Positions 2,433-46,520 of a stretch of 64,000 bases of DNA are shown piece by piece (positions within the stretch are counted from its first letter, which is position 1; every line of letters starts with the position of its first letter). The notes beneath the pieces were generated by a model, which saw only the letters and a program-made list of their open reading frames with translations, did no database searches and was not told where the DNA came from. This stretch comes from Kudoa neothunni (Eukaryota > Animalia > Cnidaria): contig OZ199840.1 of NCBI GenBank assembly GCA_964304625.1, positions 2,272,532 to 2,336,531 on the forward strand. Direction: 5' to 3'. The translations under genes and the position numbers were made by a program.

Positions 2433-5400
2433 TTATAGATCGTTAGAAATCTCCTTAGAATTCTTTCTGTAAACTGCTATACCTATCACTACCAAAAGTG
2501 AAACCACGATGGGTATCATTGCATATAATCTAAAAAAGATTATCTATAACAAATATGCATTTCCGTTACATGTAACTTCCAACAAACCTATCTAATGTCA
2601 AACTCGGAAATATAAATGTCAATTACGAATAACTATTCTTTGCAGCATCAAAATTGTGATTTTCTTTACTATCTACATTTTTCCTTATTTATCAGATCAT
2701 TAAATTAAAATAATTTTACTAAATATAATCATAAATATGACATGCAAAATCGTTTTTACCCGTTCTCAACCTTTTCTATTAATTTTTGAACGATATCATC
2801 TACTACAATGTCGGTATGCTCACTCCTTATGTTTTCTCCTCCTATGATTTTTTTATTCCACAAGGAATTTCTATTGAATTTACTAAATAAATCATTTTAA
2901 TTATATAGTAAATAGTTGGAATTTAGTTACCCTTTCATTTTACCTATTCTTGAGTCTTCGAAAAATATATTATTAGAAAATACGGATTAATTAATAGTTT
3001 AAACAAAATATATATACACCGAATACTATATTTGTTATAGAGTGAGTAATCCTTTGCTTTCAATTTCAATATATAATCCTTTTCCGTCGACAAGTTATTG
3101 ATGTTAACGATACATTTATTGGCAGAGCATTCTTCGTCATCATTACACCATGTAACAATTTCCCCCTCCTGGTTGTCTCCGATTTTTTCCTGAATCATAA
3201 ACGGACATCTTGAATTGTCATTTTTTCCTGTGAAATCTACTTTAATTGTCAAGTCACTACCTCCATTCAGCGAATGCTTAGTCGAAATAGCACCATTTAC
3301 TGAATAATATTATTAAAACATAAGCTTATTGATTTTGAATACTTGTCTCAACAGTATACTCCTTTTGTTTTTTGCCATCGGATGGTTCGACGGTCAAATC
3401 GTAAGTCGCTCCTAATTCTAGGTTGACAATTTTGAACTTAGCATCACATTTGTTCTCGCATTCTCCCATTTCATCACATGTAGCCATATATTTTGGATCT
3501 GACGTGCCATTTTTTTTAACATAAATTCTGCAGACCGGCAAATAATTATCAAATCCAAATGGTGTTATTGTAGCAGTGGAACCCTTTTTGTTTAATGGTG
3601 TATTATTTGTAGTTAAATCATTTCCCTCAGCTTAATAAACTGTTAGAATTTTTTTTAATTTTAGTCGTTACATGTTCGGAATGTTGCTTTCTTTACATAG
3701 TTATTAATTCCAATGTTGGTTACCGTTACAGAAATTATATAATTTGTACCAGCCGTAAGACCAGTAATAGAGTACATCTCGTCACAGCTAGTGCCGCATT
3801 CACCACTGTCATTACAATTAGCCCGTGCTTCAATCGAAAAAGTATTTGCTCGGCGTATTTTAATTGTACACATTGGGTCAGACATTCCTTTCTTCATACT
3901 CTTATACGCGTTAAGTCCGATAAGGGTGACACCCCTATCTTTAATATCGCTTAAATTTATGGCATTGTCATTTCCTATAACGCATTATTTTTAAAGATAA
4001 ATCCAAATTTACTTTTAAAGTATTGTTCGAACCCATCGATATCAAACCTTCGTTTTACAATTATTCCAATATTCTCACTTTCATCCGTTAAATTGATAAC
4101 ACTATCTTGACAAAGATGGAAACACTCTTTTTTCTCCTCAGTGCATCCATTCAGAACAGTACTTTGTTGAGTTGGGTTACTTTCACTTACCTTAAACACT
4201 TTGATGTGACAAATCTCGTCATTATATGGACCAGGAGAGAATTTTATTTGAAGTTTTCTATTGTTACTAGCATCGCCTGAAATTGAATAAATGATCTGAG
4301 ATTTTAGGGGGGTCTCAGTTTTCAAATAAGTATTATTTACGTAATAGAATATGGCAGGCCAAAGCAGTGTTGAACTGATATTATAATAACTTATGTATCT
4401 ATCAATTAAAAGAGCAGTGGATTTATCCTGTAAATTCTCAGAATACGATTCCATATTCAAGATGGCCTTTTTGGCACTGCTTTGTTCATCATCTTTTCCG
4501 TCATTTTGTATATTCCAATCAGTTATTGAGTTTGATTTGTAAGAGAAAATAACTTTTCCCTCATCATGAGAAAAGCCATAAGTGTTATCTTGTTTGAAAT
4601 CTATAAAAATATTATCATAAATATATATTTTTTTAATTACTCATTATTAATGGGAACACTTGCACCTTTTTACATCTTTTGGCTTCTACGTTGTCTGCGC
4701 CATAACAAACTGATATATATCGATCAACTTTTGAATTAATATATCCAACGTTTAGATCACTGTTGGTGCAGTCCACCAAACAATCATCATTATCTAAGTC
4801 TTCGCAAAGTTCTGGCTTTTTAAATTCGGTTCCTTCAAAATTAATTATCTTTATTACACACTTATTAGCATCAGGAAAACTGGACAGTTTTATTGAAAAT
4901 TTGTCAACTTTATCCGAAGATTGTATAAACTTCTGTTCAAGTTTTCCACGTCGAATGAAAGCTAAAAACGAATGTGAACAGAGATTCTTTTAAAAGTTAC
5001 CTGGTATTGATAACTTGAATGGTGCTGATTTTTTGTCTGCATATATCATCAATCTGTAGTTATACTTATTACTGTATGTATTATGTTCAAATTGAATATC
5101 GTTGCAATCTTTGACATCACCATTATCACAATCAATGCAGGATTTTATTATTCTTGTAGGTGAAACTATTTAACGATAATAAAAGTAATATGACACGATT
5201 ACCTTCGTTTTGGTCATGTTTATATAACTGATAGTAACATTTTGTATTGCTAACGTCTTCCAAAGATGATTTCATTTGTACGAGAAGCTTGTTCTTCTCG
5301 GAATTTGTTGAAACTTCAAAGTTGATTGTTGAACCGCCTAATGGTTATTTCTTCTATTATCGAATATATACATAACGATTGTTACTCTTATTTTGAGTTT

Positions 5401-8400
5401 CTAAAGTTTTTATTCCATAATTTCCACTGGGAACAATTTTGAGGGTATAAGTGGTATGGAAGTTAAGTCCAATAATGTCGAACCCTGATTTGCACGGCTT
5501 TACACACAACTCCTTTCCTGAACAAATGGCAGGATAATATAAATCACTTTTCTCTTTTATGTAGATGGTACAAATTATTGATTCATCTATTGTATTTTGG
5601 GGAACTGTGATTCCGTTCGGACTAGTAGTGATTGAAGACTCTTGAATGGGAAGTTGTTGGTTTGCTTGAGCAGAAAATATATTTAAAATACCGTCTAATT
5701 TTATAAAATACCTATTTTATGGAAAAAATATTTTCTTGGTGAGTAATTAGGTATTTTAGTTATAGTCACCATAATATCATTATGTAAATGATTTGGAGGA
5801 GGAGTAATTTGAACCTCCCCAAAGCTACAAGTAAATGATTGGTCATCTACATCTTTCCTTCCGTTTTCAGTAACTAATGGAGCATATGTGTTCCACATCT
5901 TTATTGAGCATGCAACAGATGGATTAGTTAATTCCTCACCATCTTCATTTTTATTTTTTCCAGTAAGATTAATTTGAATTTCTGTATCTGTTGTTTTCAC
6001 AGAAACATCAGGTAAGTGTTTCACTAAAAATTACAGGTGATTTACTGAATATATCTAAATCTTACGTATGTATATATTATTTTGATAACCGATAGTAGGT
6101 TTCATTCCTAGTTTTAGGACCCTTATTTTAACGGCTTTTACACTCGTGTGCATATTTCCAAATTTGTAGCTCTTGCACGTACTGAAAAAACAATTCTCCC
6201 TATTATCACATTCGTTCGAAAAAAAACCGTTCGAATTCGATGCTGTGGCGTCTATCCATTCAAATATGCACATTTCAGATGGCTCTGGATTAACCAGTTG
6301 AACTGTCAATGTTTCCTCTTGTTCATCATTTTTTAGTTCATAATAAAATCTATTGAAAATTGGGGCTTGGTTTTTAACAAATGTATTGTCGTAGAAATAA
6401 TGAAAATCAAAATATTCCGGACAGCTTATATAATAGTCTTTTATTAACTCGTCGAATTGAATCGAATAACTTCCAAAATCACATTGGGAGATTGTAGATT
6501 GTGTTTCCGTCACAGAATCTAGCACTTGGGTATCCTTATATGCTTTACATGATAATGAGCATTTATTCAAACCTAATTTTATTTTGTCGCCTTCTAATTC
6601 TGCTTTGTGAGTAAGTTCTTTGAAATGATCTTAAGAAATGATTAAATTAATAAAAAAATTATATAATACCTATGTAGTACGAATAGACCTTTCCTATATT
6701 AATAGTGACGCCTATGTCCGTTGGTTGTGGAGGTTTTTCAGGTTCATGTGATGCAAGAGAAGCTCCTTTCTCCATTTCTTCGTTTCCCATTCCTTTTGAA
6801 GATTGCTTTCCTCCATCGTCATTTCCTGGAGATGGCCTAAACTCACCTTCGCCCGATTTTGCAATGATACCTCTGTTAATACCTGATTTCCTCGTAGTTT
6901 TTACAGTTTTAGTTTCTGTATAAGTGACAGAAATGTAATTTGGTTTATTCTGACTATTAGGATCAATTTCGAATGCTGTTGAGAGTTCGGTGCATTTTTT
7001 TTTAATCATCCCGCTACTACCAACATTTTCATAACCCGAAAGGGCTACATTAGATTTTTGGATTGTGCATTCCGTATTCTGCTTACCTGTAAGATCAGTG
7101 TCTATGAATTTTACCATGTACTTTGATTCTGATTTATCGTAATATAGGACCATTTTTTCATTACCTTCTTCAATACCACCTATAAATATAAATTTAATAC
7201 TTCTATAAAAGAAAAAATACATTTTAAGCTTTGTTTTTGGGGGTTAGAGTAATCTACATTTATAACAACTAATGTATATGTGACTTCGCAGTTGAGAGAA
7301 TCCCATACGAAATCTATTGTCTTAGATCCACTAGTTACAGCAAGTTTACAACCGTCATTCAAACAATCCTTAATAATTTTCTTAGATTCTTGTTCCAGTA
7401 GAACGTATGCCCAAGAAGTTCTTAAAGTTTGATCTGAAGAAACAGCATCCAATGTAGCCGTTGTTTTCTTGTCCCCATCATCTGTTGAAACGTCTATTTT
7501 TATTTCGGTTCCAGCAGCTATTAAAATTCATTATTATTAGATTTCATAAATAAATTACTCGACACCGTACCGCCTTCAATACAGTTATATCCTTTAGGAC
7601 AAACAGTTATTTTGTATTCTGTTTTGGGATCAAGATTTATTATATTGAAATTTCCATTACAAGCACCAGAACAGAATTTTTTAGCATCACCTTCTCCACA
7701 TGTGGCGGGATACATCGGTGTATCATTTCCAACGGTTGAATAATACAGATCACATTTTTCCTGATTACCTGTTCCAGCAGAAAATAAATTGGATAAGTTA
7801 AGAGTTATTTTATTATATTGATCAGAAGGATTGGTCGAGGTAAGATCAGCAGTTTTTGTTAATTCATCTCCTATTTGTAATTATGAATACAGAGTAAATA
7901 TTTATCTTTACCTTTAGTTTTGAAATAAAAATAACGGTGATAATAATTAACTTCCGGCGAATCTAATGTGTTAAGTCCTTTTATTTTAACTTTTAAAATA
8001 TATTCGGTTAGTGGCATAAGCAAGCTCAAAATTATCGATTGAAAACCTCCGTTCCCATTATACGCGGGATTTCCCCAATTATCTTTAATTCCCAGATTTT
8101 TCTCAATTATTTTAATTTCTACGATAGCTGCTCCCTCTACAGCACTATCTTCTTCATTTTTATTTAAATTAGTTAACTCTAAAGATGCTTCATTCTTTCC
8201 AATGTCAGTAATAGTGGGTTGACTGGTACGGACTATAAAATTGATAAGAGACATTAGATAGATTACAGTTTACATGTGATAGTTTGAATAAACTCTTTGG
8301 ATATGATCTTGTCTAGGGGTTTTACAAGTACTTGAGCGAATTTCAAGGTTGGATTATGTTGATGATATAATGTCGCTTTGTAGCAAGGCTGAAGACAAGG

Positions 8401-23843: not shown

Positions 23844-26800
23844 TTACAGTACAACGATCAAGCATCCAAACAGCGAGAGTAAAACAATCAATAAAATCTC
23901 TTAAATATATTTACAAACAAAATTTGATCAATTGATTACTTTCTTTTGTTTTGTTTAATGGTTTGACTTGAGCACCTGACTCTCTATTATTTAAAATTAT
24001 TTATAAAACAAAAATTATATATATAAATTATAACAATTTATTTTGTATTTAAGCTGTCAATAATTGTTTTCAAAGTTATAAATACGTTTTTTTATCTTTT
24101 TCACTCTCATATTCATTTTGTTCGGTTGTTCCATCTTTATTGTTATCAGTCTCTGTTGCCTTGGTGGTTTCATACGTATTTTCTTTTGGAATATCAGATG
24201 TTTCTCTATCAGTTTGTTCATTAATAGTTTCTTTTGGAGCGTGTGTAGTTTCTTTTGGAGCGTGTGTAGTTTCTTTTGGAGCGTGTGTAGTTTCTTTTGG
24301 AGCGTGTGTAGTTTCTTTTGGAGCGTGTGTAGTTTCTTTTGGAGCGTGTGTAGTTTCTTTTGGAGCGTGTGTAGTTTCTTTTGGAGCGTGTGTAGTTTCT
24401 TTTGGAGCGTGTGTAGTTTCTTTTGGAGCGTGTGTAGTTTCTTTTGGAGCGTGTGTAGTTTCTTTTGGAGCGTGTGTAGTTTCTTTTGGAGCGTGTGTAG
24501 TTTCTTGTGAAGCGTGTGTAGTTTCTTTTGGAGCGTGTGTAGTTTCTTTTGGAGCGTGTGTAGTTTCTTTTGGAGCGTGTGTAGTTTCTTTTGGAGCGTG
24601 TGTAGTTTCTTGTGAAGCGTGTGTAGTTTCTTTTGGAGCGTGTGTAGTTTCTTTTGGAGCGTGTGTAGTTTCTTTTGGAGCGTGTGTAGTTTCTTTTGGA
24701 GCGTGTGTAGTTTCTTTTGGAGCGTGTGTAGTTTCTTTTGGAGCGTGTGTAGTTTCTTTTGGAGCGTGTGTAGTTTCTTTTGGAGCGTGTGTAGTTTCTT
24801 TTGGAGCGTGTGTAGTTTCTTTTGGAGCGTGTGTAGTTTCTTTTGGAGCGTGTGTAGTTTCTTTTGGAGCGTGTGTAGTTTCTTTTGGAGCGTGTGTAGT
24901 TTCTTTTGGAGCGTGTGTAGTTTCTTTTGAAGCGTGTGTAGTTTCTTTTGGAGCGTGTGTAGTTTCTTGTGAAGCGTGTGTAGTTTCTTGTGAAGCGTGT
25001 GTAGTTTCTTTTGGAGCGTGTGTAGTTTCTTTTGGAGCGTGTGTAGTTTCTTTTGGAGCGTGTGTAGTTTCTTGTGAAGCGTGTGTAGTTTCTTTTGGAG
25101 CGTGTGTAGTTTCTTTTGGAGCGTGTGTAGTTTCTTTTGGAGCGTGTGTAGTTTCTTTTGGAGCGTGTGTAGTTTCTTGTGAAGCGTGTGTAGTTTCTTT
25201 TGGAGCGTGTGTAGTTTCTTTTGGAGCGTGTGTAGTTTCTTTTGGAGCGTGTGTAGTTTCTTTTGGAGCGTGTGTAGTTTCTTTTGGAGCGTGTGTAGTT
25301 TCTTTTGGAGCGTGTGTAGTTTCTTTTGGAGCGTGTGTAGTTTCTTTTGGAGCGTGTGTAGTTTCTTTTGGAGCGTGTGTAGTTTCTTTTGGAGCGTGTG
25401 TAGTTTCTTTTGGAGCGTGTGTAGTTTCTTTTGGAGCGTGTGTAGTTTCTTTTGGAGCGTGTGTAGTTTCTTTTGGAGCGTGTGTAGTTTCTTTTGAAGC
25501 GTGTGTAGTTTCTTTTGGAGCGTGTGTAGTTTCTTGTGAAGCGTGTGTAGTTTCTTGTGAAGCGTGTGTAGTTTCTTTTGGAGCGTGTGTAGTTTCTTTT
25601 GGAGCGTGTGTAGTTTCTTTTGGAGCGTGTGTAGTTTCTTTTGGAGCGTGTGTAGTTTCTTTTGGAGCGTGTGTAGTTTCTTTTGGAGCGTGTGTAGTTT
25701 CTTTTGAAGCGTGTGTAGTTTCTTTTGAAGCGTGTGTAGTTTCTTTTGGAGCGTGTGTAGTTTCTTTTGGAGCGTGTGTAGTTTCTTTTGGAGCGTGTGT
25801 AGTTTCTTTTGGAGCGTGTGTAGTTTCTTTTGGAGCGTGTGTAGTTTCTTTTGGAGCGTGTGTAGTTTCTTTTGGAGCGTGTGTAGTTTCTTTTGGAGCG
25901 TGTGTAGTTTCTTTTGGAGCGTGTGTAGTTTCTTTTGGAGCGTGTGTAGTTTCTTTTGGAGCGTGTGTAGTTTCTTTTGGAGCGTGTGTAGTTTCTTTTG
26001 GAGCGTGTGTAGTTTCTTTTGGAGCGTGTGTAGTTTCTTTTGGAGCGTGTGTAGTTTCTTTTGGAGCGTGTGTAGTTTCTTTTGGAGCGTATGTAGTTTC
26101 TTTTGGAGCGTGTGTAGTTTCTTTTGGAGCGTGTGTAGTTTCTTTTGAAGCGTATGTAGTCTCCTCATGTTGAGGTTTAGTCGTCGTGTCAAGAGAGTTT
26201 GGTAGTTTGTTTTCGTCGTTGGGATCTATTGGATTACTTTTTGGTTGTTCTGGGGTTAGTTCACCGAAAATTCCGAGATTTTCTGGTCTAGAAAAAATTA
26301 ATCCAGTCGATAAAATAATATTACATTTTATAGGTTGAACACTTCCCTTCCTTGTTACAATACTAGAGGAGGTGAATTTAGAATTTTTAATATAATTTCA
26401 TTAATACTTGGTTGTATGAACATGAGACGTCCTTACAAAGACTAAAATCCTTGTATTCACTCTCACATTTTCCCATCACACACACCTATATTTATTTACT
26501 CCTTGTTTTGAAGTTATATTACTATTCCTTCTGGACAATGAATATTTTCACATGTCAAGCGATTCTTCTGTGCGTTAATGCACCTATTATTAAGACACAT
26601 CTAAATCATTTTCAATGAGTAAAATTCATAACACAAATACACTGTTTTCAGAGCATTTATGCCCATTAGGGACAAAACCCAAGAAATTATCAGACTCTGT
26701 GGGTATCACAAATCTATCATTATTATAAATATATCTCAAATACGAAAACAATTACGGGCATAATCCATCAGATGTACTCAGTTTGTAATATGTTCCAAAA

Positions 26801-28604
26801 ATAATTGCGTCTGGTGGCGCAAAACAGTTTAATAAACCACAGTAAGAAATACTAATAGTAATTAATATAAATTAAAATTCCTTGTGATATGATAACACAT
26901 TTTCACATCTTTTATCGTAATTAACTTTACCTATGACAGAATTTATGTATTAATACTGAATTATTGTCTTACTCGAATTGTGTAACTGATGACATTGTTG
27001 ATTAGCATTAGGACACTTACCATCGACACAATAAGCCTTACATATTATTAATACAATCCCAGTCATCAAGTTAATTTACCAATCCAGAATTACATGGTGT
27101 TCCATCTGGTTTGATATTAGAGGATGGACACTATAATTAATTCAAATATAAATTTCAATAAACAATAATTTTTATTTTAATTACAAATGGACTTTTTCCG
27201 TTACAAGTTTCCTGCATGTGACACTGATCACCTTTTCGGCATACGTTCCCTTTCTTGAGCTGTTTAGTAGTTAAAATGGTTACACCATAACTAATAACGT
27301 ATGAAAGGTTAATAGTTGTCTACCTGACAAGAAGAACAACACTCTCCTTTAGAACATTGAGCATGAGATTTAAGTTTACATGTACTCATATCGCAACATT
27401 CATTTTCTCCGCTTATTATACAATTTGCTTCAAACCCGCAGTCACATTCTTCACCGGGATCCACCATCCCATTGCCGCATACATGAAATGTTTCAAAATT
27501 AACATTTTTCTAATTAGCAACAATAAAAATCATTAAATTATTAATTATATACCAACAAGAAATCATTTTTATGATAATTGTCAAAGTGTTTTTTTATATA
27601 ATCAAAACCTTTCACACTAAATCCGGGAGGATATGGGATATTATCTGGCCTAGATTATTAAATAAATGAATAATACTATTAGCAATAATATACCATCCAC
27701 TTGAACTTGGCCTCATAAGGCATCTCAGATTTATATCAAAACATTTGCTGCCTTGAGATGGAAATTCAAACACAAATATTCTAATAAATAAGATACTCCC
27801 GTGAGGAATGTGAGGCGATCCAAATAAATGGCCTAATTCGTGAGAAAATGTTACGTGATCAATCCATCTATTTAACGGTTCTTGTATTGAAATCTTTTAT
27901 ATATTGATAAAAATAAAATATTTAAATTTATACTTGAACTACAGCTGAACCGAAAACAGGATTATGGTTAAAATTAAAATTCGCTATACCTGACGGTCCC
28001 CCTCCCTCATAAAAATATCGGTAACTAGAATAAATTATTATAATAATTATATTTTTTGTTACATAAACAATATGTGATATCCACTTCGTATAGATGTAGT
28101 TTTGAGAAACTTTCGAAATTCAATCCCCATAATAGTTAAAATGGATTTGGGCTCTTGAAAATTGCTACCTTTAAATGACTTCACAACTAGTTTAATGTTA
28201 TGCCAAGCATAGGTCTATAATAATTTTATAGAAACAATTTTCATTAAGGACGTTACAGTCATTGACTTTATGACGACATCTCTCATATATGCGGGTTCTT
28301 TTAAATCAAGCTTCATCTAAAACAGATTAAACTACGATGTAAAATTTGTATACTGTGCTTTTGGCTTTGTGGATATGAATGTGGGCGTATTTTGTTTTTT
28401 CCATACGCTTAAGATAGTTTTGATCTCTCCACAACTATTTAATTATCATCATCATTTAATAAAACTAAATTTTTACTTCGGTGGCACAAATTCCATATCT
28501 TATAATAACTATTTTAAAGTTTTATAATTGTGAACTGATAATTGATATTTACCACTTAATACAAGAAATACAAGTAAAACCTTTGGCATATTAACTTTGC
28601 TCAT
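23844..28604 (-). CDS. ADAM/reprolysin (M12B) metalloprotease-disintegrin lacking a prodomain, with mucin stalk and GPI-type C-terminus
   Basis: Spliced translation gives: signal [26 protein letters not shown]; zinc motif [11 protein letters not shown] (27810-27842); Met-turn CLMRP; disintegrin [50 protein letters not shown]; Cys-rich domain (PDGTPC, YCVDGKC, CGLLNC, VPNGHKC); ETTHAPK repeat exon; terminal [21 protein letters not shown]. The start could be 28604 or 28589. Confidence 0.9.
24225..26161 (-). repeat. Coding minisatellite, 21-nt unit x about 92, encoding ETTHAPK (variants [21 protein letters not shown])
   Basis: The unit GAAACTACACACGCTCCAAAA is in frame with the ADAM exon (..[40 protein letters not shown]). 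This frame is missing from the ORF track because it has no start codon. Confidence 0.95.
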
Positions 28605-30187
28605 TATTTATGGATTAATTTTTATGTTTTACTTTTTGTCAAGTGTATTACCAAAAATATGCCTATTATTGATTAATATTAGTAATATCTCAATAAATAA
28701 AAATATAATTTTCTAAAATCACTTGAAAAAGTATGATAAATTTTTCAAATTCATGTAATATTTAAAATATAAGTTATAACATAGAACGTAAAGTTTTAAT
28801 CCAAAAAATCAGGGAGGATGCTCGCAGAATGAAGTCAGAACTCCCATTAAAACAGATTAAGTCATATCCTATTATGTAATTTCCCCTTATCCTGGAGTAA
28901 AATTATATTCTAAAATAAGTCGAACATTTATTATTTATTATATTAAATTGTTAATGTTTAATTTGTAAATTATTTCATTATATTTATCATATGCCAGCAG
29001 TATTAATAGTAATTCTAATAAGAGTCTTTTTAATGTGTATAGTTAATTATTTGTGTAATTACTAAAAACAACTTAATAGATAGATTTAATCAATCGATCG
29101 AAATATTATATATCACAAAAATATTTTTAATCAGAATATATAATCCTTGGTTATTCAATTAAGGCGTGGATGCACGGATTGAGTCATCCCATTACCAAAG
29201 TACGTATAGTGAGTATATTGGGAATAAAATTTAGATAATGAAATCTGTGATTATTAATCAGTATAATTACAGTGGGAAGTCTATTTTGAAAAATCCCTTC
29301 TGAACCATTAAAAAGTATGTAAAATCGGTTGCAATTTTTTTCACATACTTTTTGCGCATACACATAATAGTTAAGTATATCATTTTTGGAAATTTTTAAA
29401 ATAAATTATTGTTCGTTTTATTGAAAATTTTCTGTTGAATAAAAGTTCTATAACAGGAAAAAACCAAATGATACGTAGTTTAAATAATTGAACAAATCGA
29501 TTATTTTGGATTGGCTAATATTTTGATCCATTATAACATATAGATAAAAAATCTATATATTTTTAAATTAGCAGTAAAATTTGGATCTTTTTCGGAAATT
29601 GTCATTTAGAGTAGTTGTATGTTAATGCTGAAATGTTTCTCATCAGCCATCTTGATGTTTTGAATGAAATTTTCATAGTATTTATTATTTTTACCTTTGC
29701 TTGCAGACATATATATAATTTTTTGAGAATAATTGTATGTTGGATCAACAAATTTCCTCCAAAAAATGTATTAAATCCAAAAATCACGTGATTGCAAAAG
29801 CATATATTTTACATCATGTACAGTCAACTATTTTAACTAAAGTACCGTTGAGTTGAATATATTTTAATGCATAAACCTAAGAAATACTTAAAATTATAAT
29901 CAAATAATTTTATAAAAAGTGTACAATATCGATTACCAACTATATTTAAATTATATCTTTAACTTTAATCTGTTAATTATTTGAATAGCGATAAATTTAT
30001 AAACTGTGATTTCTTCAATCAATAATAAATTATAAAATATTATTAATTTTTTTAAAATAATATTACAAGAATTCATCTGAATATAATGAATATAATATAT
30101 ATGCGTGAAAGCTTGAATTAACATTTTAAATCTTCATAATAAATTTGAGATGTAACAGAATTAGAGAATATTTTCATATTTTCGCAT

Positions 30188-34879: not shown

Positions 34880-36790
34880 GTATACGAGATAGAACTTATT
34901 TATAATTGGATGTAGTATCCGGTTCATCATAGCCTGGAATGTGGGTGGCGCATTGCACAACCCGGATGGCATTCTATTGGATCAGAATAAACCGAACGGT
35001 GTAATGAATGCTATCTTCCATCTTGATGTTTTTTTACTTCAATCCGATGGGATCCTGAAGATAGGTCGAATTTCGAGAATATTGCGGAGCCTCCCAGTCT
35101 ATCAAAATCTTCATCTATTCTAGGTAATGGATAACTATTTTTGATTGTTATATTGTTCAGTCTTCTGTAGTCGATGCAAAGTCTATATTCTACTGTTTTC
35201 TCATTGACTAAGATAACGTTGGATGCCCAGGGGTTCTCCGATGGTTCTAATATTCCCTCGGACAACATTTTATGCATTTGTTTTTCAATTTCGTCGCAAT
35301 GTGAAAAGGTTGCGTCTTAGGAATCCTTCATTCGCTGGAAGCGTATTTATGAAAATTTCAAATTTGTGTTGAGTTCCAGTTGCTTTCTTCAACGGGCCAG
35401 TTTTGTCGTACATCAAATCTGAGAATTCTTCCAGAATATTCCTGATTGTGACCACAAATGGTTTATTTGTTATCTTCGTGCGAAGAACATCTGGCAAACG
35501 TTCGCTGGTTCTAATTCCTTTGTTTCCAGTATCAATAATAATTCCAAATTTTATTAGTAGGTCTAATGCGATTATTAATTCACGACCAGAGACGTTTGGA
35601 ATGAGGAATTCGCATATTTGTATAATATTATTGTAGCAAACTTCTATGCTTGTCGTAAAACTCACAACCGACTTGTATCCTCCCACCAAAAGACTGGTTA
35701 TCTTTGAGATTTTGGGGACGCACTTTGGACGTGTTCTTGCAACGTCCATTGCGATAGAGGATCTACCTGATCCCGTATCGACAAGACCTGTAACCTCAAT
35801 GTCGTTTAACTTGAGGCGAATGGTTAATGAATTGCCGCGCCGAAAAGGTAACCACAAACATAGGAACGTCTGCTAAATTCTGAAATGATGAACTTGTTAT
35901 TTTTAAACCGTTAGGAGAATCTTTTCGCAAAATGTCCAGATTTTCCACACAGGTAGCATACACCGGAGTCATCGCAACTATGAATTTTCGCCTTGTTGAG
36001 CTCTGCCATCATTCCAGGATCGAAAAGTTGTTTTTGTACTGCAGATCTATCCAACTTTTGGGCTACCAGTAGGGCATTTTTGATATCATTCATCTTTGTG
36101 ATCAGTAGGTGGTTTCAAATTTAGATGTGGATAGCCTTGACAAATTGGTTGCATAAGATTCTTCGCAATAAGACCTCCTTTGAACCTTCAAAAGCCAACT
36201 TACTCAGACTTGTAAACCTATCGCAGAATGATTTATGTCTTCTCCATCGTTCTGGAACATTCTAGTTGTAACAGGTAGGAAAGATTTATTGCAACTATAA
36301 TAATCAATCTTTTTTACCTTGAAGTCGTCGAAATCGCTATAATTGTTTATCCCATTGCTAATCATCCTTCCGTATACGACATCAGACAGCATGGGCGAGG
36401 AAGTATCTAACCCAATTCGACTTGTTCATTATTATCAATTTAAATCATCATTCCACTCTTCCAACCATGTGAGCCACTTTCGAGGTTCCATCATACAGAT
36501 CGATCCTAAATAACTCCCCAGTTGTGGGAGTCACAATTTTGCACACAACAAAACACTCGATAAATATGGCAACATTTGCTAATCCGCGTAATGATTATTT
36601 ATGCTCATCGAGGAATATCAGGTAACATCGAGATGACGTCATCGCTTCGCAATTTCTATCATTCATGCTGATGATCTTCCTCGTGCCTAACATAAAGATA
36701 TTCTCATTCGTCTGGCAGAGTATAAACTCCTCAGACGAATCGTTATCAATTTCAGATCTCACACGATTGGATCTAAAATGTTACCTTTCA
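34880..36790 (-). mobile_element. Truncated Ty3/Gypsy retrotransposon (gag-protease-RT fragment)
   Basis: Zinc knuckle CYLCGKSGHFAKR, protease LVDTGS, RT WASNVILV..YRLCIDYRRLN..YPLPRID..FSKFDLSSG and PFGLCNAPPTFQ. Frameshifted and cut at the Helitron at 34869. Confidence 0.9.
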
Positions 36791-44300: not shown

Positions 44301-46520
44301 ATTATTGTTACGGGGAAAACGAGGAATGAACACTTGAGAACGTTAGATAAGGTGCTGAATATATTTCAGCAGCATGGTCTTCGCCTGAACAAAGAGAAAT
44401 GTGCTTTCCTTAACGAATCTATTGAATATTGCAGATACAATGTTTCCAGAAAAGGCCTAATAAAAAGTTAAATGGTGTGGAAGAAGTAATGAGGATGCAA
44501 AAACCTTCTAATAAAACAGACATAAGGATATTCTATGGAATGCTAAATTATTATAGGAAATTTATTCCAAATTTTTCTTCCATACCCAATTCCTGTATAA
44601 CTTGCTGAAGAAAGAAAATGAGTTTACTTTCGAATAAAAATATGCTAGTCTATTTTGATCCATCTCTAAAATTATTATTGACAACAGACGCTTCTGGCAG
44701 TGGTGTTGGTGCAGTATTATCCCATGTTATGGACGATAACCTTGTGAGACCTATCTCATTTATTTCTAGAAGCCTATCAAAAAGAGAGGAAAATTGTTCC
44801 ACGATTAAAAAAGAAGGATTAGCGATCATTTGAGCAATTCAGAAGTTCCATCATTACCTGGAGGGATGACGATTCACCTTGTCAACTGAATATAAGCCAT
44901 TTTTAATCCTAAAAATGGGATACCGAAGACAGCAGCGTCTAGAATCCAAAGGTGGGTAGTCATTATCTGGATACTTGTTTGAAATCAAATATCGAGCGGG
45001 GTCTGAAAATAATCCTGGTGATTGTTTTCCTCGCCTTTTTATGAGAAAGAAGGACGCTAATGAAGAACTTGAAGTGGCAAATGATATGATTGATAAATTA
45101 GTTGTTAAAAAAATTTTAAAACATGGACACTTTCACTTTACGCTTGAAGAACTGACGAGAGAAACAATGGCAGATGAAATCCTAAGTAGTGTTATTAGTC
45201 ATTTTAAGAATGGATGGAAAAGCAAAATACCAATCGGATTGGAACAATTCAAAAGGAGGAAAAATGAGATATCGTTTTTGAATGGATCATTGCTACTTGG
45301 CGGACGGATTATCATACCCAAATCACTCCAAAGTATAGTGTTGAAGGAATTGCATGCGGGGCATATGGGAATATCAAGAACCAAAGAACTAGCGAGAAGT
45401 TATGTTTGGTGGCCTAACATAAACCGTGATATTAAAAGGGTAAACTTCAGCTGCCGCTCATGCCAAGAAGAAAAACGCAAAATGCCTATAAAAAGCAAAG
45501 TACTGCAATGGGAGAATTGTTCACATCCACTGGAAGGAGTACATTTCGATTTTGCTGGTCCTATTAAAGGGTTGTATTTGCTTATAATGGTCGACGCTTA
45601 TTCAAAATGGCCTGAGGTGATACCTATGAGTTCGCCAAATGGAGATAGAACTGTTTCTGTTATGAGGACCTTATTTTCACGTCTTGGTAATCCTGAAACA
45701 ACGGTGTCTGATAATTGTCCCAAATTTGTCCCCAAAGAAATGAGGGATTTTACTGCTAGCAATAACATCAGACATAAATTTATTTTAGCTTACCATCCAT
45801 CTTCCGACGGACTGGCAGAAAGGTTTGTACGACCTTCAAAGGATGCCTTGATAAATCTGATAGTGACATACAAAAAAGTATCGATCGGTTCCTGCTCCAT
45901 CAAAGAAACACACTACACAGCACAACATCAATGGCGCAATCAATCTGTATGATGGGAAGGAGGCCAGGTAGTTTCTTCGACACGTTGAAGATCCAGCCAG
46001 GGAAACCAAGAATGAATAGAGAAAAGGGAACACGAGTACTAGAGCCCGGTGAAACTGTACTGATTCGAAATTTCTTGAAAGGCCCCAAATGAATTAAGGG
46101 TAAAGTTCTTAGAGCGGTTGCACCCCTTACATATTTGGTGTTATCCAACGGACGAGAATTAAAAAGGCATATTGACCATTTGATAATGATTCCATACACT
46201 GAACCAAATGATGAGATTGATGCAAACCCAGCTGAAGAAGATTTACATCAACAACAAATGGTAATGGCCAATACTAAAAACCAATTATAGATTCTACGGC
46301 CCAGGAGGTAGAAAACCCTAATCTTATTGACGATAATGTATCATCTGATAGTGAAGATGTAAATGAACCAACCTTAAGAAGATCTACAAGAAAAGTAAAT
46401 AAACCTGGGAATGAAGAGATGTTATGTTGGTAGATTAATACAGGAGATTAACAAACCATTTGCTAGGGGGCGCAATTATTATTGTTGTTATTGACACTTT
46501 TTTGCTCTCGTCGAACATCA
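41352..46520 (+). mobile_element. Mag-clade Gypsy LTR retrotransposon, decayed, with short LTRs
   Basis: LTRs at about 41352-41462 and 46420-46520 (TGTTATGTT..). PBS TGGCGACGAGGAT at 41464 is complementary to the tRNA-Ser(GCT) 3' end, and a purine tract precedes the 3' LTR. Coding motifs: twin zinc knuckles, protease EIDT, RT WATTIV/VRICADF/YPLP/YLDN, RNase H TDASGSGVGAVL, integrase LHAGH..CRSC, HFDFAGP, SDN, GLAERFV. Confidence 0.92.
42376..43705 (-). mobile_element. Merlin/ISXO2-like transposase copy plus a partial duplicate nested in the Gypsy element
   Basis: VEIDETKFG, GARVLGGVERTPE, IITDCSKSY, TVYHS, WGAIK, FLGEFQWRR. 43490-43700 repeats about 42800-43010 imperfectly. Confidence 0.85.

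Follow-up and report, generated by a model that had tools for sequence, protein, structure and literature searches.

A predicted family of ADAM-like surface proteins without a prodomain in Kudoa neothunni, one copy of which carries a minisatellite-expanded stalk

The prodomain of ADAM metalloproteases is held to be necessary for their folding and latency, and whether proteins of this type can be built without it is the question raised by a gene in the genome of Kudoa neothunni. The gene lies in a 64,000-nucleotide (nt) stretch of contig OZ199840.1 (positions 2,272,532 to 2,336,531), referred to here as the window, on the minus strand, from an ATG at 28604 to a TAA at 23846-23844; its 22 exons give a joined product of 1264 amino acids (aa). 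An initial annotation, made from these letters, had described it as an ADAM with no prodomain, a long mucin stalk and a probable glycosylphosphatidylinositol (GPI) anchor. The reading that we favour, with a probability of roughly 65%, is that the gene belongs to a recently duplicated pair within a lineage-specific family of prodomain-less, ADAM-like surface proteins, this copy having a mucin-like stalk expanded to 734 residues by a minisatellite. The window is AT-rich (about 30% GC) and is part of an 11.05-Mb contig; the whole assembly, of 40.26 Mb, has three large contigs and a small one of 18.2 kb.

The zinc exon matches 13 places in the genome and the disintegrin profile matches 26. A common build is seen at no fewer than 13 loci of the 40-Mb genome and in one metagenome relative: a signal-peptide exon, a micro-exon, catalytic, disintegrin and cysteine-rich regions, two 4-Cys modules, a short stalk and a hydrophobic, tail-less C-terminus. 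The metagenome relative (L004), found on a 4.1-kb public scaffold, comes from a related organism and has the same structure. Members at 36-47% identity keep their exon structure from an exon starting with L-W, which carries the first catalytic strand, to the last Cys module. A hydrophobic stretch ending at a stop codon lies 270-440 nt past the last Cys exon in all members that were inspected; this indicates stalks of about 20-40 aa and no cytoplasmic tail in the sister genes. Homology to the tail of the window gene can be recognised in L002 and in the L009/L011 pair. Concerning this pair, which is located about 125-157 kb before the window, the stop-terminated hydrophobic exon (L009:8112-8162 and L011:2256-2306) is found about 400 nt after the last Cys exon.

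The gene model was built by reading the three frames and by comparison with the sister genes, and all database, family and structure searches were run exon by exon. All 21 introns are of the GT..AG type, with a median length of 42 nt and a range of 37-102 nt; a 21-nt intron before exon 16 was dropped in favour of a 42-nt intron. The model is not a product of chance, since the frame stays open across 22 exons with canonical splice sites throughout and since a twin copy of the gene, described below, shows 10 synonymous and 5 non-synonymous changes over 1868 coding nt. No annotated protein of this gene was retrieved with the stalk exon as query. The features are as follows, in window positions, with the minus strand given as (-).

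28553-28604 (-): exon 1, ATG and signal-peptide-like hydrophobic stretch, 17 codons plus 1 nt, phase-1 donor GTAAAT
28477-28508 (-): exon 2, 32-nt micro-exon of 11 codons with one Cys, which restores the frame between GT..AG introns of 44 and 42 nt
28354-28434 (-): exon 3, conserved L-W start and first catalytic strand K-Y-A-H-I-H-I-H, present in all paralogs
28316-28257, 28214-28063, 28024-27934, 27893-27797, 27751-27694 and 27649-27553 (-): exons 4-9, remaining catalytic domain (paralog tblastx/tblastn, Reprolysin_5, hhalign)
27807-27842 (-): zinc motif of 11 residues, followed by Ile (read from the sequence)
27714-27722 (-): Met-turn C-L-M (read from the sequence; C-I-M or C-L-M in paralogs)
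27509-27324 and 27259-27185 (-): exons 10-11, disintegrin domain (Pfam Disintegrin, E 3.5e-10 and 4.4e-4)
27130-27080, 27036-26973, 26930-26897, 26851-26756 and 26713-26641 (-): exons 12-16, ADAM cysteine-rich region (ADAM_CR match on one exon)
26600-26523, 26485-26408 and 26362-26325 (-): exons 17-19, two 4-Cys modules (Cys spacing, conserved in paralogs)
24086-26287 (-): exon 20, stalk exon, a single open frame of 734 codons with a P-E-N start as in the short stalk exons of L002 and L009
24225-26160 (-): coding minisatellite, 92 x 21 nt, encoding ETTHAPK (Tandem Repeats Finder and unit typing)
23940-23983 (-): exon 21, S-G-A (23979-23971) and polar spacer, with splice phases as in the penultimate exon of L002
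23844-23899 (-): exon 22, Lys, 17 hydrophobic residues (23897-23847) and TAA, with homologous tails in L002 and L009/L011
23809-23814 (-): AATAAA, 30 nt past the stop codon, which fits a transcript ending here without a further 3' exon

The 5' end decides whether a prodomain could be encoded. An ATG-led hydrophobic exon is present 155-195 nt upstream of the L-W exon in six of seven family members, each time with a phase-1 GT donor, whereas the acceptor of the L-W exon is of phase 0, and conserved. The frame is restored by the micro-exon, which was located by hand with the same size and phase in L002, L007, L008 and L010, and with 29 nt in L004. The two exons are thus conserved in position and phase in six members, one of them from another organism, and the micro-exon is also retained in dispersed 5' fragments of the gene. 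A direct join from the exon 1 donor at 28552 to an acceptor at 28424, missing in most sister genes, was rejected: in frame here and in L002, it is impossible in L004, L007 and L008. Because the micro-exon sits between exon 1 and the L-W exon, the first catalytic strand starts about 26 residues past the likely cleavage site, and the distance of about 15 aa given in the initial annotation has to be corrected accordingly.

Only about 150 residues separate the signal peptide from the zinc motif, roughly the size needed for the upper subdomain of a metzincin. An in-frame TAA stands two codons upstream of the ATG. No propeptide signal (PF01562) was found by Pfam in the frames of the 3.4 kb upstream, where frame reading gave no coding signal either; a genome-wide search for the same family gave no match, with a search control that was itself silent. 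The short gap to the catalytic domain, the conserved 5' exons, the upstream stop and the lack of an upstream propeptide signal leave no room for a prodomain in the model. The prediction of a prodomain-less protein is therefore borne out by the family comparison, and extends to the whole family: as far as gene models can tell, nothing can fit between signal peptide and catalytic domain.

Two observations were made on other loci in this context. A more canonical ADAM-like gene has, only about 830 nt ahead of its Reprolysin exon, a COA8-like neighbour at L025:3253-3696 (G000:C1:13246752-13247195); with so little prodomain space there, short N-termini may be general for the ADAM-like genes of this genome. 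The same gene, considered as a positive control for the prodomain search, was unusable, as it seemingly has no prodomain space itself. Furthermore, the 5' end at 28390-29949 of the window recurs at no fewer than five dispersed sites, with 80-85% identity to the window and with all three large contigs represented (L019:2538-4166, L020:6082-7707, L021:2456-4079, G000:C1:17038931-17040561 and C1:11567-13201). What these copies share with the gene is roughly 1.3 kb of DNA preceding exon 1, exon 1 itself, the micro-exon and the opening 15 codons of exon 3, and their frame stops directly after the shared part. The L019, L020 and L021 copies are 99% identical to one another over 2.5 kb or more. The dispersed copies have the look of gene fragments that travel with a repeat or mobile element.

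As for the catalytic domain, the initial annotation is confirmed in that the zinc motif and the Met-turn are intact, with Ile in place of the Asp after the third His. The zinc exon gives a Reprolysin_5 match (E 5.6e-6) and, in the PDB search, the zinc helix closest to its own is found in ADAM10, with 13 of 18 residues shared (E 0.012). A profile of eight family members was compared by hhalign with 11 catalytic domains of canonical ADAMs, drawn from the library matches, and a probability of 97.8 (E 8e-13) was obtained over 175 collinear columns, starting at column 11 with the K-Y-x-H-I-x-I strand; the strand of exon 3 thus aligns with the first strand of canonical ADAM catalytic domains. Exon 5, which starts with T-Y-A-W-H-N-I, has its AWHNI motif in common with an exon that matches Reprolysin positions 43-75 and belongs to a more canonical ADAM-like gene in this genome. 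A sequence-atlas search with exon 5 returned noise only, and blastp of the catalytic part against ordinary ADAMs gave no match. From these comparisons the catalytic domain is read as highly divergent, but complete and of the reprolysin type.

Wherever family members could be aligned at the place after the third His (L002, L003, L004, L008, L009, L010 and L013), they have Ile, Val or Phe, whereas Asp is found there in 11 of the 18 motif-bearing library matches (canonical ADAMs). Two members have an altered zinc motif: L012 is without the third His, and L007 has a changed Gly. Another ADAM-like gene, at L026:8118-8237 (G000:C2:7478617-7478736), carries HEIGHNLGSDH followed by Tyr, so the loss of Asp is not restricted to this family.

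Further downstream, the disintegrin exon scores 40.9 bits with PF00200, above the cut-off, and a library search of 1.84 billion proteins gave 574 matches to it with E no higher than 0.001; among solved structures in the PDB, P-III snake venom metalloproteinases and ADAM22 come closest (E 4e-11 to 3e-7). The ADAM_CR match (PF08516, E 6.3e-4 on one exon) is below the cut-off because the domain is split over exons. When joined, the disintegrin and cysteine-rich part shows 33-48% identity to ADAMs over 130-240 aa by local blastp. A K-G-D triplet stands in the disintegrin loop (window 27227-27235); the sister genes have Q-A-D, K-A-D or K-G-G at this place, so it is not a conserved motif. In the position of the EGF domain, the initial annotation had placed two follistatin-N-like modules. 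Two 4-Cys modules are indeed present, spaced C-x4-C-x5-C-x4/5-C and devoid of a CxC motif, but the follistatin-N label found no support: the FOLN profile gave no match per exon at E up to 10, each module being intron-split. EGF-like Pfam matches on these split modules are sub-threshold (EGF_STAB1-2, E 0.049; DUF7107, E 0.056).

The stalk of about 700 Thr-rich residues that had been noticed measures 734 aa by the frame of its exon, with 27% T, 15% E, 13% K, 13% A, 12% H and 12% P (T+S+P about 41%). Its 21-nt repeat amounts to 92.2 copies with 98% matches between 24225 and 26160, read as ETTHAPK heptads; 78 of the 92 units are identical in DNA and only five DNA variants exist. A 27-unit block is duplicated inside the array, a higher-order structure that speaks for recent growth. 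Searched genome-wide, a two-unit repeat pattern has 91 matches here, 6 in the twin and none elsewhere. As the twin has only 7 heptads and the repeat is confined to these two loci, the long stalk would be a very recent, copy-specific expansion. It was thus rightly described for this copy, but it is not a trait of the family, given the 7 heptads of the twin and the short stalks of the other members. On sequence grounds the mucin-like repeat is unstable in length, and an O-glycosylated, extended stalk is predicted.

The twin (L001, G000:C3:2208000-2217999, gene at 4487-7502) lies 85.6 kb away and is intact, encoding 669 aa. Outside the array it is 99% identical to the window gene, with introns differing by 0.93%; its S-D-A stands where the window gene has S-G-A, and its intron 14 is longer by a 41-nt insertion. 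The duplicated block measures about 16 kb (window about 16.9-33.0 kb), identity within it varies, being 95% at the left end and 99.8% at the right end, and the DNA between the copies is unrelated. Many other ADAM-like loci were likewise seen as near-identical pairs, in direct or inverted orientation or on different contigs, for instance C3:2115026(+)/2147247(-), C3:9801080/9845916, C2:115127/129352 and C1:17059825/C2:11998194; they could reflect recent duplication or an assembly effect.

At the C-terminus, S-G-A is followed by an 11-residue polar spacer, 17 hydrophobic residues and the stop codon. Hydropathy analysis of the joined model gave only two hydrophobic segments (residues 4-27 and 1248-1264), in agreement with the earlier description of a terminal hydrophobic stretch with no cytoplasmic tail, and without an internal transmembrane helix. 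The proposed GPI anchor is upheld in part, in that the form of the signal fits by inspection and hydropathy, while the GPI-pathway families were found without a match in searches whose controls were near silent. GPI anchoring is likely, judging from the form of this signal.

Several observations weigh against our reading. Individually, the exons upstream of the zinc helix have no Pfam match, and a control comparison from which the zinc helix and all that follows had been removed gave P 0.04 only, over 110 collinear columns, so that the upper subdomain is weakly supported on its own. Four Pfam families for GPI transamidase and synthesis (PF04113, PF04114, PF01650 and PF08288; PIG-T, GAA1, the C13 peptidases PIG-K and legumain, and PIG-A) have no exon-level match genome-wide; in the controls none matched for PF04113 and PF04114, and 1 of 14 prokaryotic control genomes matched for each of PF01650 and PF08288, one such match being no proof that a divergent, intron-split eukaryotic gene would be detected. 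Three RNA runs with the same species label gave 0 reads at the twin locus, which is no test of expression. Finally, the twin may not be a gene of its own but an allele put in the wrong place. This last point leads to the view that the 92-unit array and the twin are together an assembly product or allelic variation, i.e. one gene with a variable repeat, a view suggested by the 99% likeness of the copies, by the DNA run X1, which gave only a window-type contig at the twin locus, and by the many family members that occur as near-identical pairs. We consider it decidedly unlikely, as a block of only about 16 kb with 95-99.8% identity, 85.6 kb off and separated by unrelated DNA, is not like a collapsed haplotype, and the array has an ordered 27-unit structure; either way, a 13-fold difference in stalk length would exist between two near-identical sequences. 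Even less probable is an error of the gene model at one end, with prodomain exons further upstream or an alternative 3' exon coding for a transmembrane helix and tail. For this view, the 5' end of the model lies in DNA also present as dispersed repeats, and the RNA runs named above gave no reads. Upstream prodomain exons are, however, hard to reconcile with the stop codon just before the ATG, with a signal peptide that cannot lie downstream of a prodomain, with the same 5' exon pair in six members and with the lack of an upstream coding signal; at the 3' end, the nearby AATAAA and the fact that all paralogs end alike speak against a further exon.

Two other alternatives bear on what the protein does rather than on how it is encoded. 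In one, the head serves adhesion only and the catalytic domain is a pseudo-protease, having lost the Asp after the third His and the prodomain for its folding. The hydrophobic residue at that place in every family member covered by the alignments, against mostly Asp in canonical ADAMs, and the altered zinc motifs of L012 and L007 point in this direction. Most members nevertheless keep the three His, the catalytic Glu and the Met-turn despite 36-47% identity, and such retention of catalytic residues after long divergence speaks for selection on catalysis; moreover, other metzincin families are functional with Ser, Glu or Pro after the third His. We regard a pseudo-protease as unlikely. Constitutive activity, which the initial annotation had proposed, is at most a conjecture drawn from the architecture, and the part in host invasion or mucus penetration that it had also suggested gains no support from these sequences. 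The other alternative takes the hydrophobic C-terminus for a retained, tail-less type I membrane anchor instead of a GPI signal, and would account for the four GPI-pathway families without a genome match, for a spacer of 11 residues, at the long end for GPI signals, and for the small-residue triplet, which is not clearly present in L002. Exon-by-exon searches with silent controls cannot show that a pathway is absent, though, and 17 hydrophobic residues running to the stop, with all charges on the luminal side, make a usual GPI signal and a poor stop-transfer anchor. A tail-less anchor is accordingly the less probable choice, but one to be reckoned with. If a splice-aware search were to confirm that the GPI families are missing, an animal without GPI anchoring would be remarkable in itself.

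Returning to the prodomain-less surface family, the architecture is established at the level of DNA, in an intact gene under constraint; secretion, folding without a prodomain, surface tethering, proteolytic activity, O-glycosylation and the extended form of the stalk are features that we infer from the sequence. The protein would enter the endoplasmic reticulum through its signal peptide and would fold without a prodomain chaperone; its C-terminal signal would be exchanged for a GPI anchor, or else kept as a tail-less membrane anchor. The O-glycosylated stalk would then keep the head, a zinc-competent protease and adhesion unit, at a long distance from the membrane, and the stalk length would change fast through unequal exchange between repeats. 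A bolder and improbable version can also be put forward, in which the family folds and works without a prodomain, any latency is due to the micro-exon-coded N-terminal peptide, whose Cys (the only unpaired ectodomain Cys in this copy) could act as a minimal cysteine switch, and the reach of the head is tuned within a very short evolutionary time by the minisatellite, with 7 vs. 92 units in two copies of 99% identity; if true, this would be a length-variation system for a surface enzyme. More broadly, a dozen or more intact ADAM-like genes without a prodomain would offer a natural test of the prodomain rule and a source of self-folding reprolysin domains, and the twin pair a natural experiment on stalk length in a surface protease/adhesin. 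If the animal is parasitic, such surface proteins would be candidate host-interface molecules.

Some further features of the window and of the genome were observed. Retrotransposon integrase (Integrase_H2C2, rve) and a weak aspartyl-protease-like frame are located at 44975-45952 (plus strand) and 35285-35857 (minus strand) of the window, the aspartyl-protease-like frame being sub-threshold (E 0.001, 19.7 bits vs. a cut-off of 26). Between 12000 and 21600, the window contains repeats with dozens of copies genome-wide, at 77-96% identity. The small contig G000:C4 (L014, L015), of 18,219 bp, has 44% GC vs. about 30% in the nuclear window and carries very divergent cox1-, cob- and nad1-like frames on both strands; it is probably the mitochondrial contig. 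HSP70 of this genome shows 75-78% identity to arthropod, rotifer, flatworm and nematode proteins, which puts the animal no more precisely than among bilaterian-like animals and does not support the myxozoan origin that the divergent small contig suggests. A search for SL1 RNA, as a sign of a nematode origin, gave no match, with a silent control.

How the protein stands among known systems can now be considered. From myxozoan transcriptomes, numerous M12 proteins that carry reprolysin and disintegrin domains have been reported (PMC7296530, PMC7835236), those reports being silent on the prodomain and GPI points. Phrase searches of the literature gave no precedent for a GPI-anchored or prodomain-less ADAM. 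We know of no well-known precedent for an ADAM of the GPI type.

With ADAMs (MEROPS M12B), the protein shares a reprolysin-type catalytic domain with HExxHxxGxxH and Met-turn, a disintegrin domain and an ADAM cysteine-rich region, in the same order. Taken domain by domain, the zinc helix is nearest to ADAM10, and the disintegrin part to P-III venom metalloproteinases, ADAM22 and ADAM28. It differs from ADAMs, whose prodomain measures about 170-200 aa, by having neither prodomain nor cysteine switch, by Ile for Asp after the third His, by two 4-Cys modules for the EGF domain, by the lack of a transmembrane helix and tail, and by a catalytic domain too divergent for blastp. As predicted from its gene, it lacks three features that define ADAMs: a prodomain, an Asp following the third His, and a transmembrane helix with tail.

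ADAMTS13, another M12B protease, has a very short propeptide that is unneeded for folding or latency, which shows that a reprolysin domain can manage without a full prodomain; unlike the present protein, it is secreted, has thrombospondin repeats and keeps a 41-residue propeptide with a furin site. ADAM28-like predictions from the mite Halotydeus destructor (KAI1293488.1, which is P0106, and P0275) have a signal peptide, Reprolysin from about residue 44, Disintegrin and ADAM_CR, and no Pep_M12B_propep match, so that the absence of a prodomain has database precedents, albeit unverified. These predictions lack both the hydrophobic C-terminus and the mucin stalk, and their canonical catalytic domain (Reprolysin, E 7e-27) is not detectably close to this family. 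Concerning the membrane end, MT4-MMP, MT6-MMP and GP63 likewise have a zinc metzincin head and a stalk that are held at the cell surface by a hydrophobic, tail-less C-terminal signal, but they belong to M10 or M8, have propeptides and no disintegrin or cysteine-rich domains, and their stalks measure tens, not hundreds, of residues. Membrane mucins and mucin-stalked enzymes, for their part, have Thr/Pro-rich tandem-repeat stalks whose length is set by the repeat number, as here; what distinguishes the present stalk is its 7-residue unit containing His and Lys/Glu, 98% uniform, and its position on an ADAM head.

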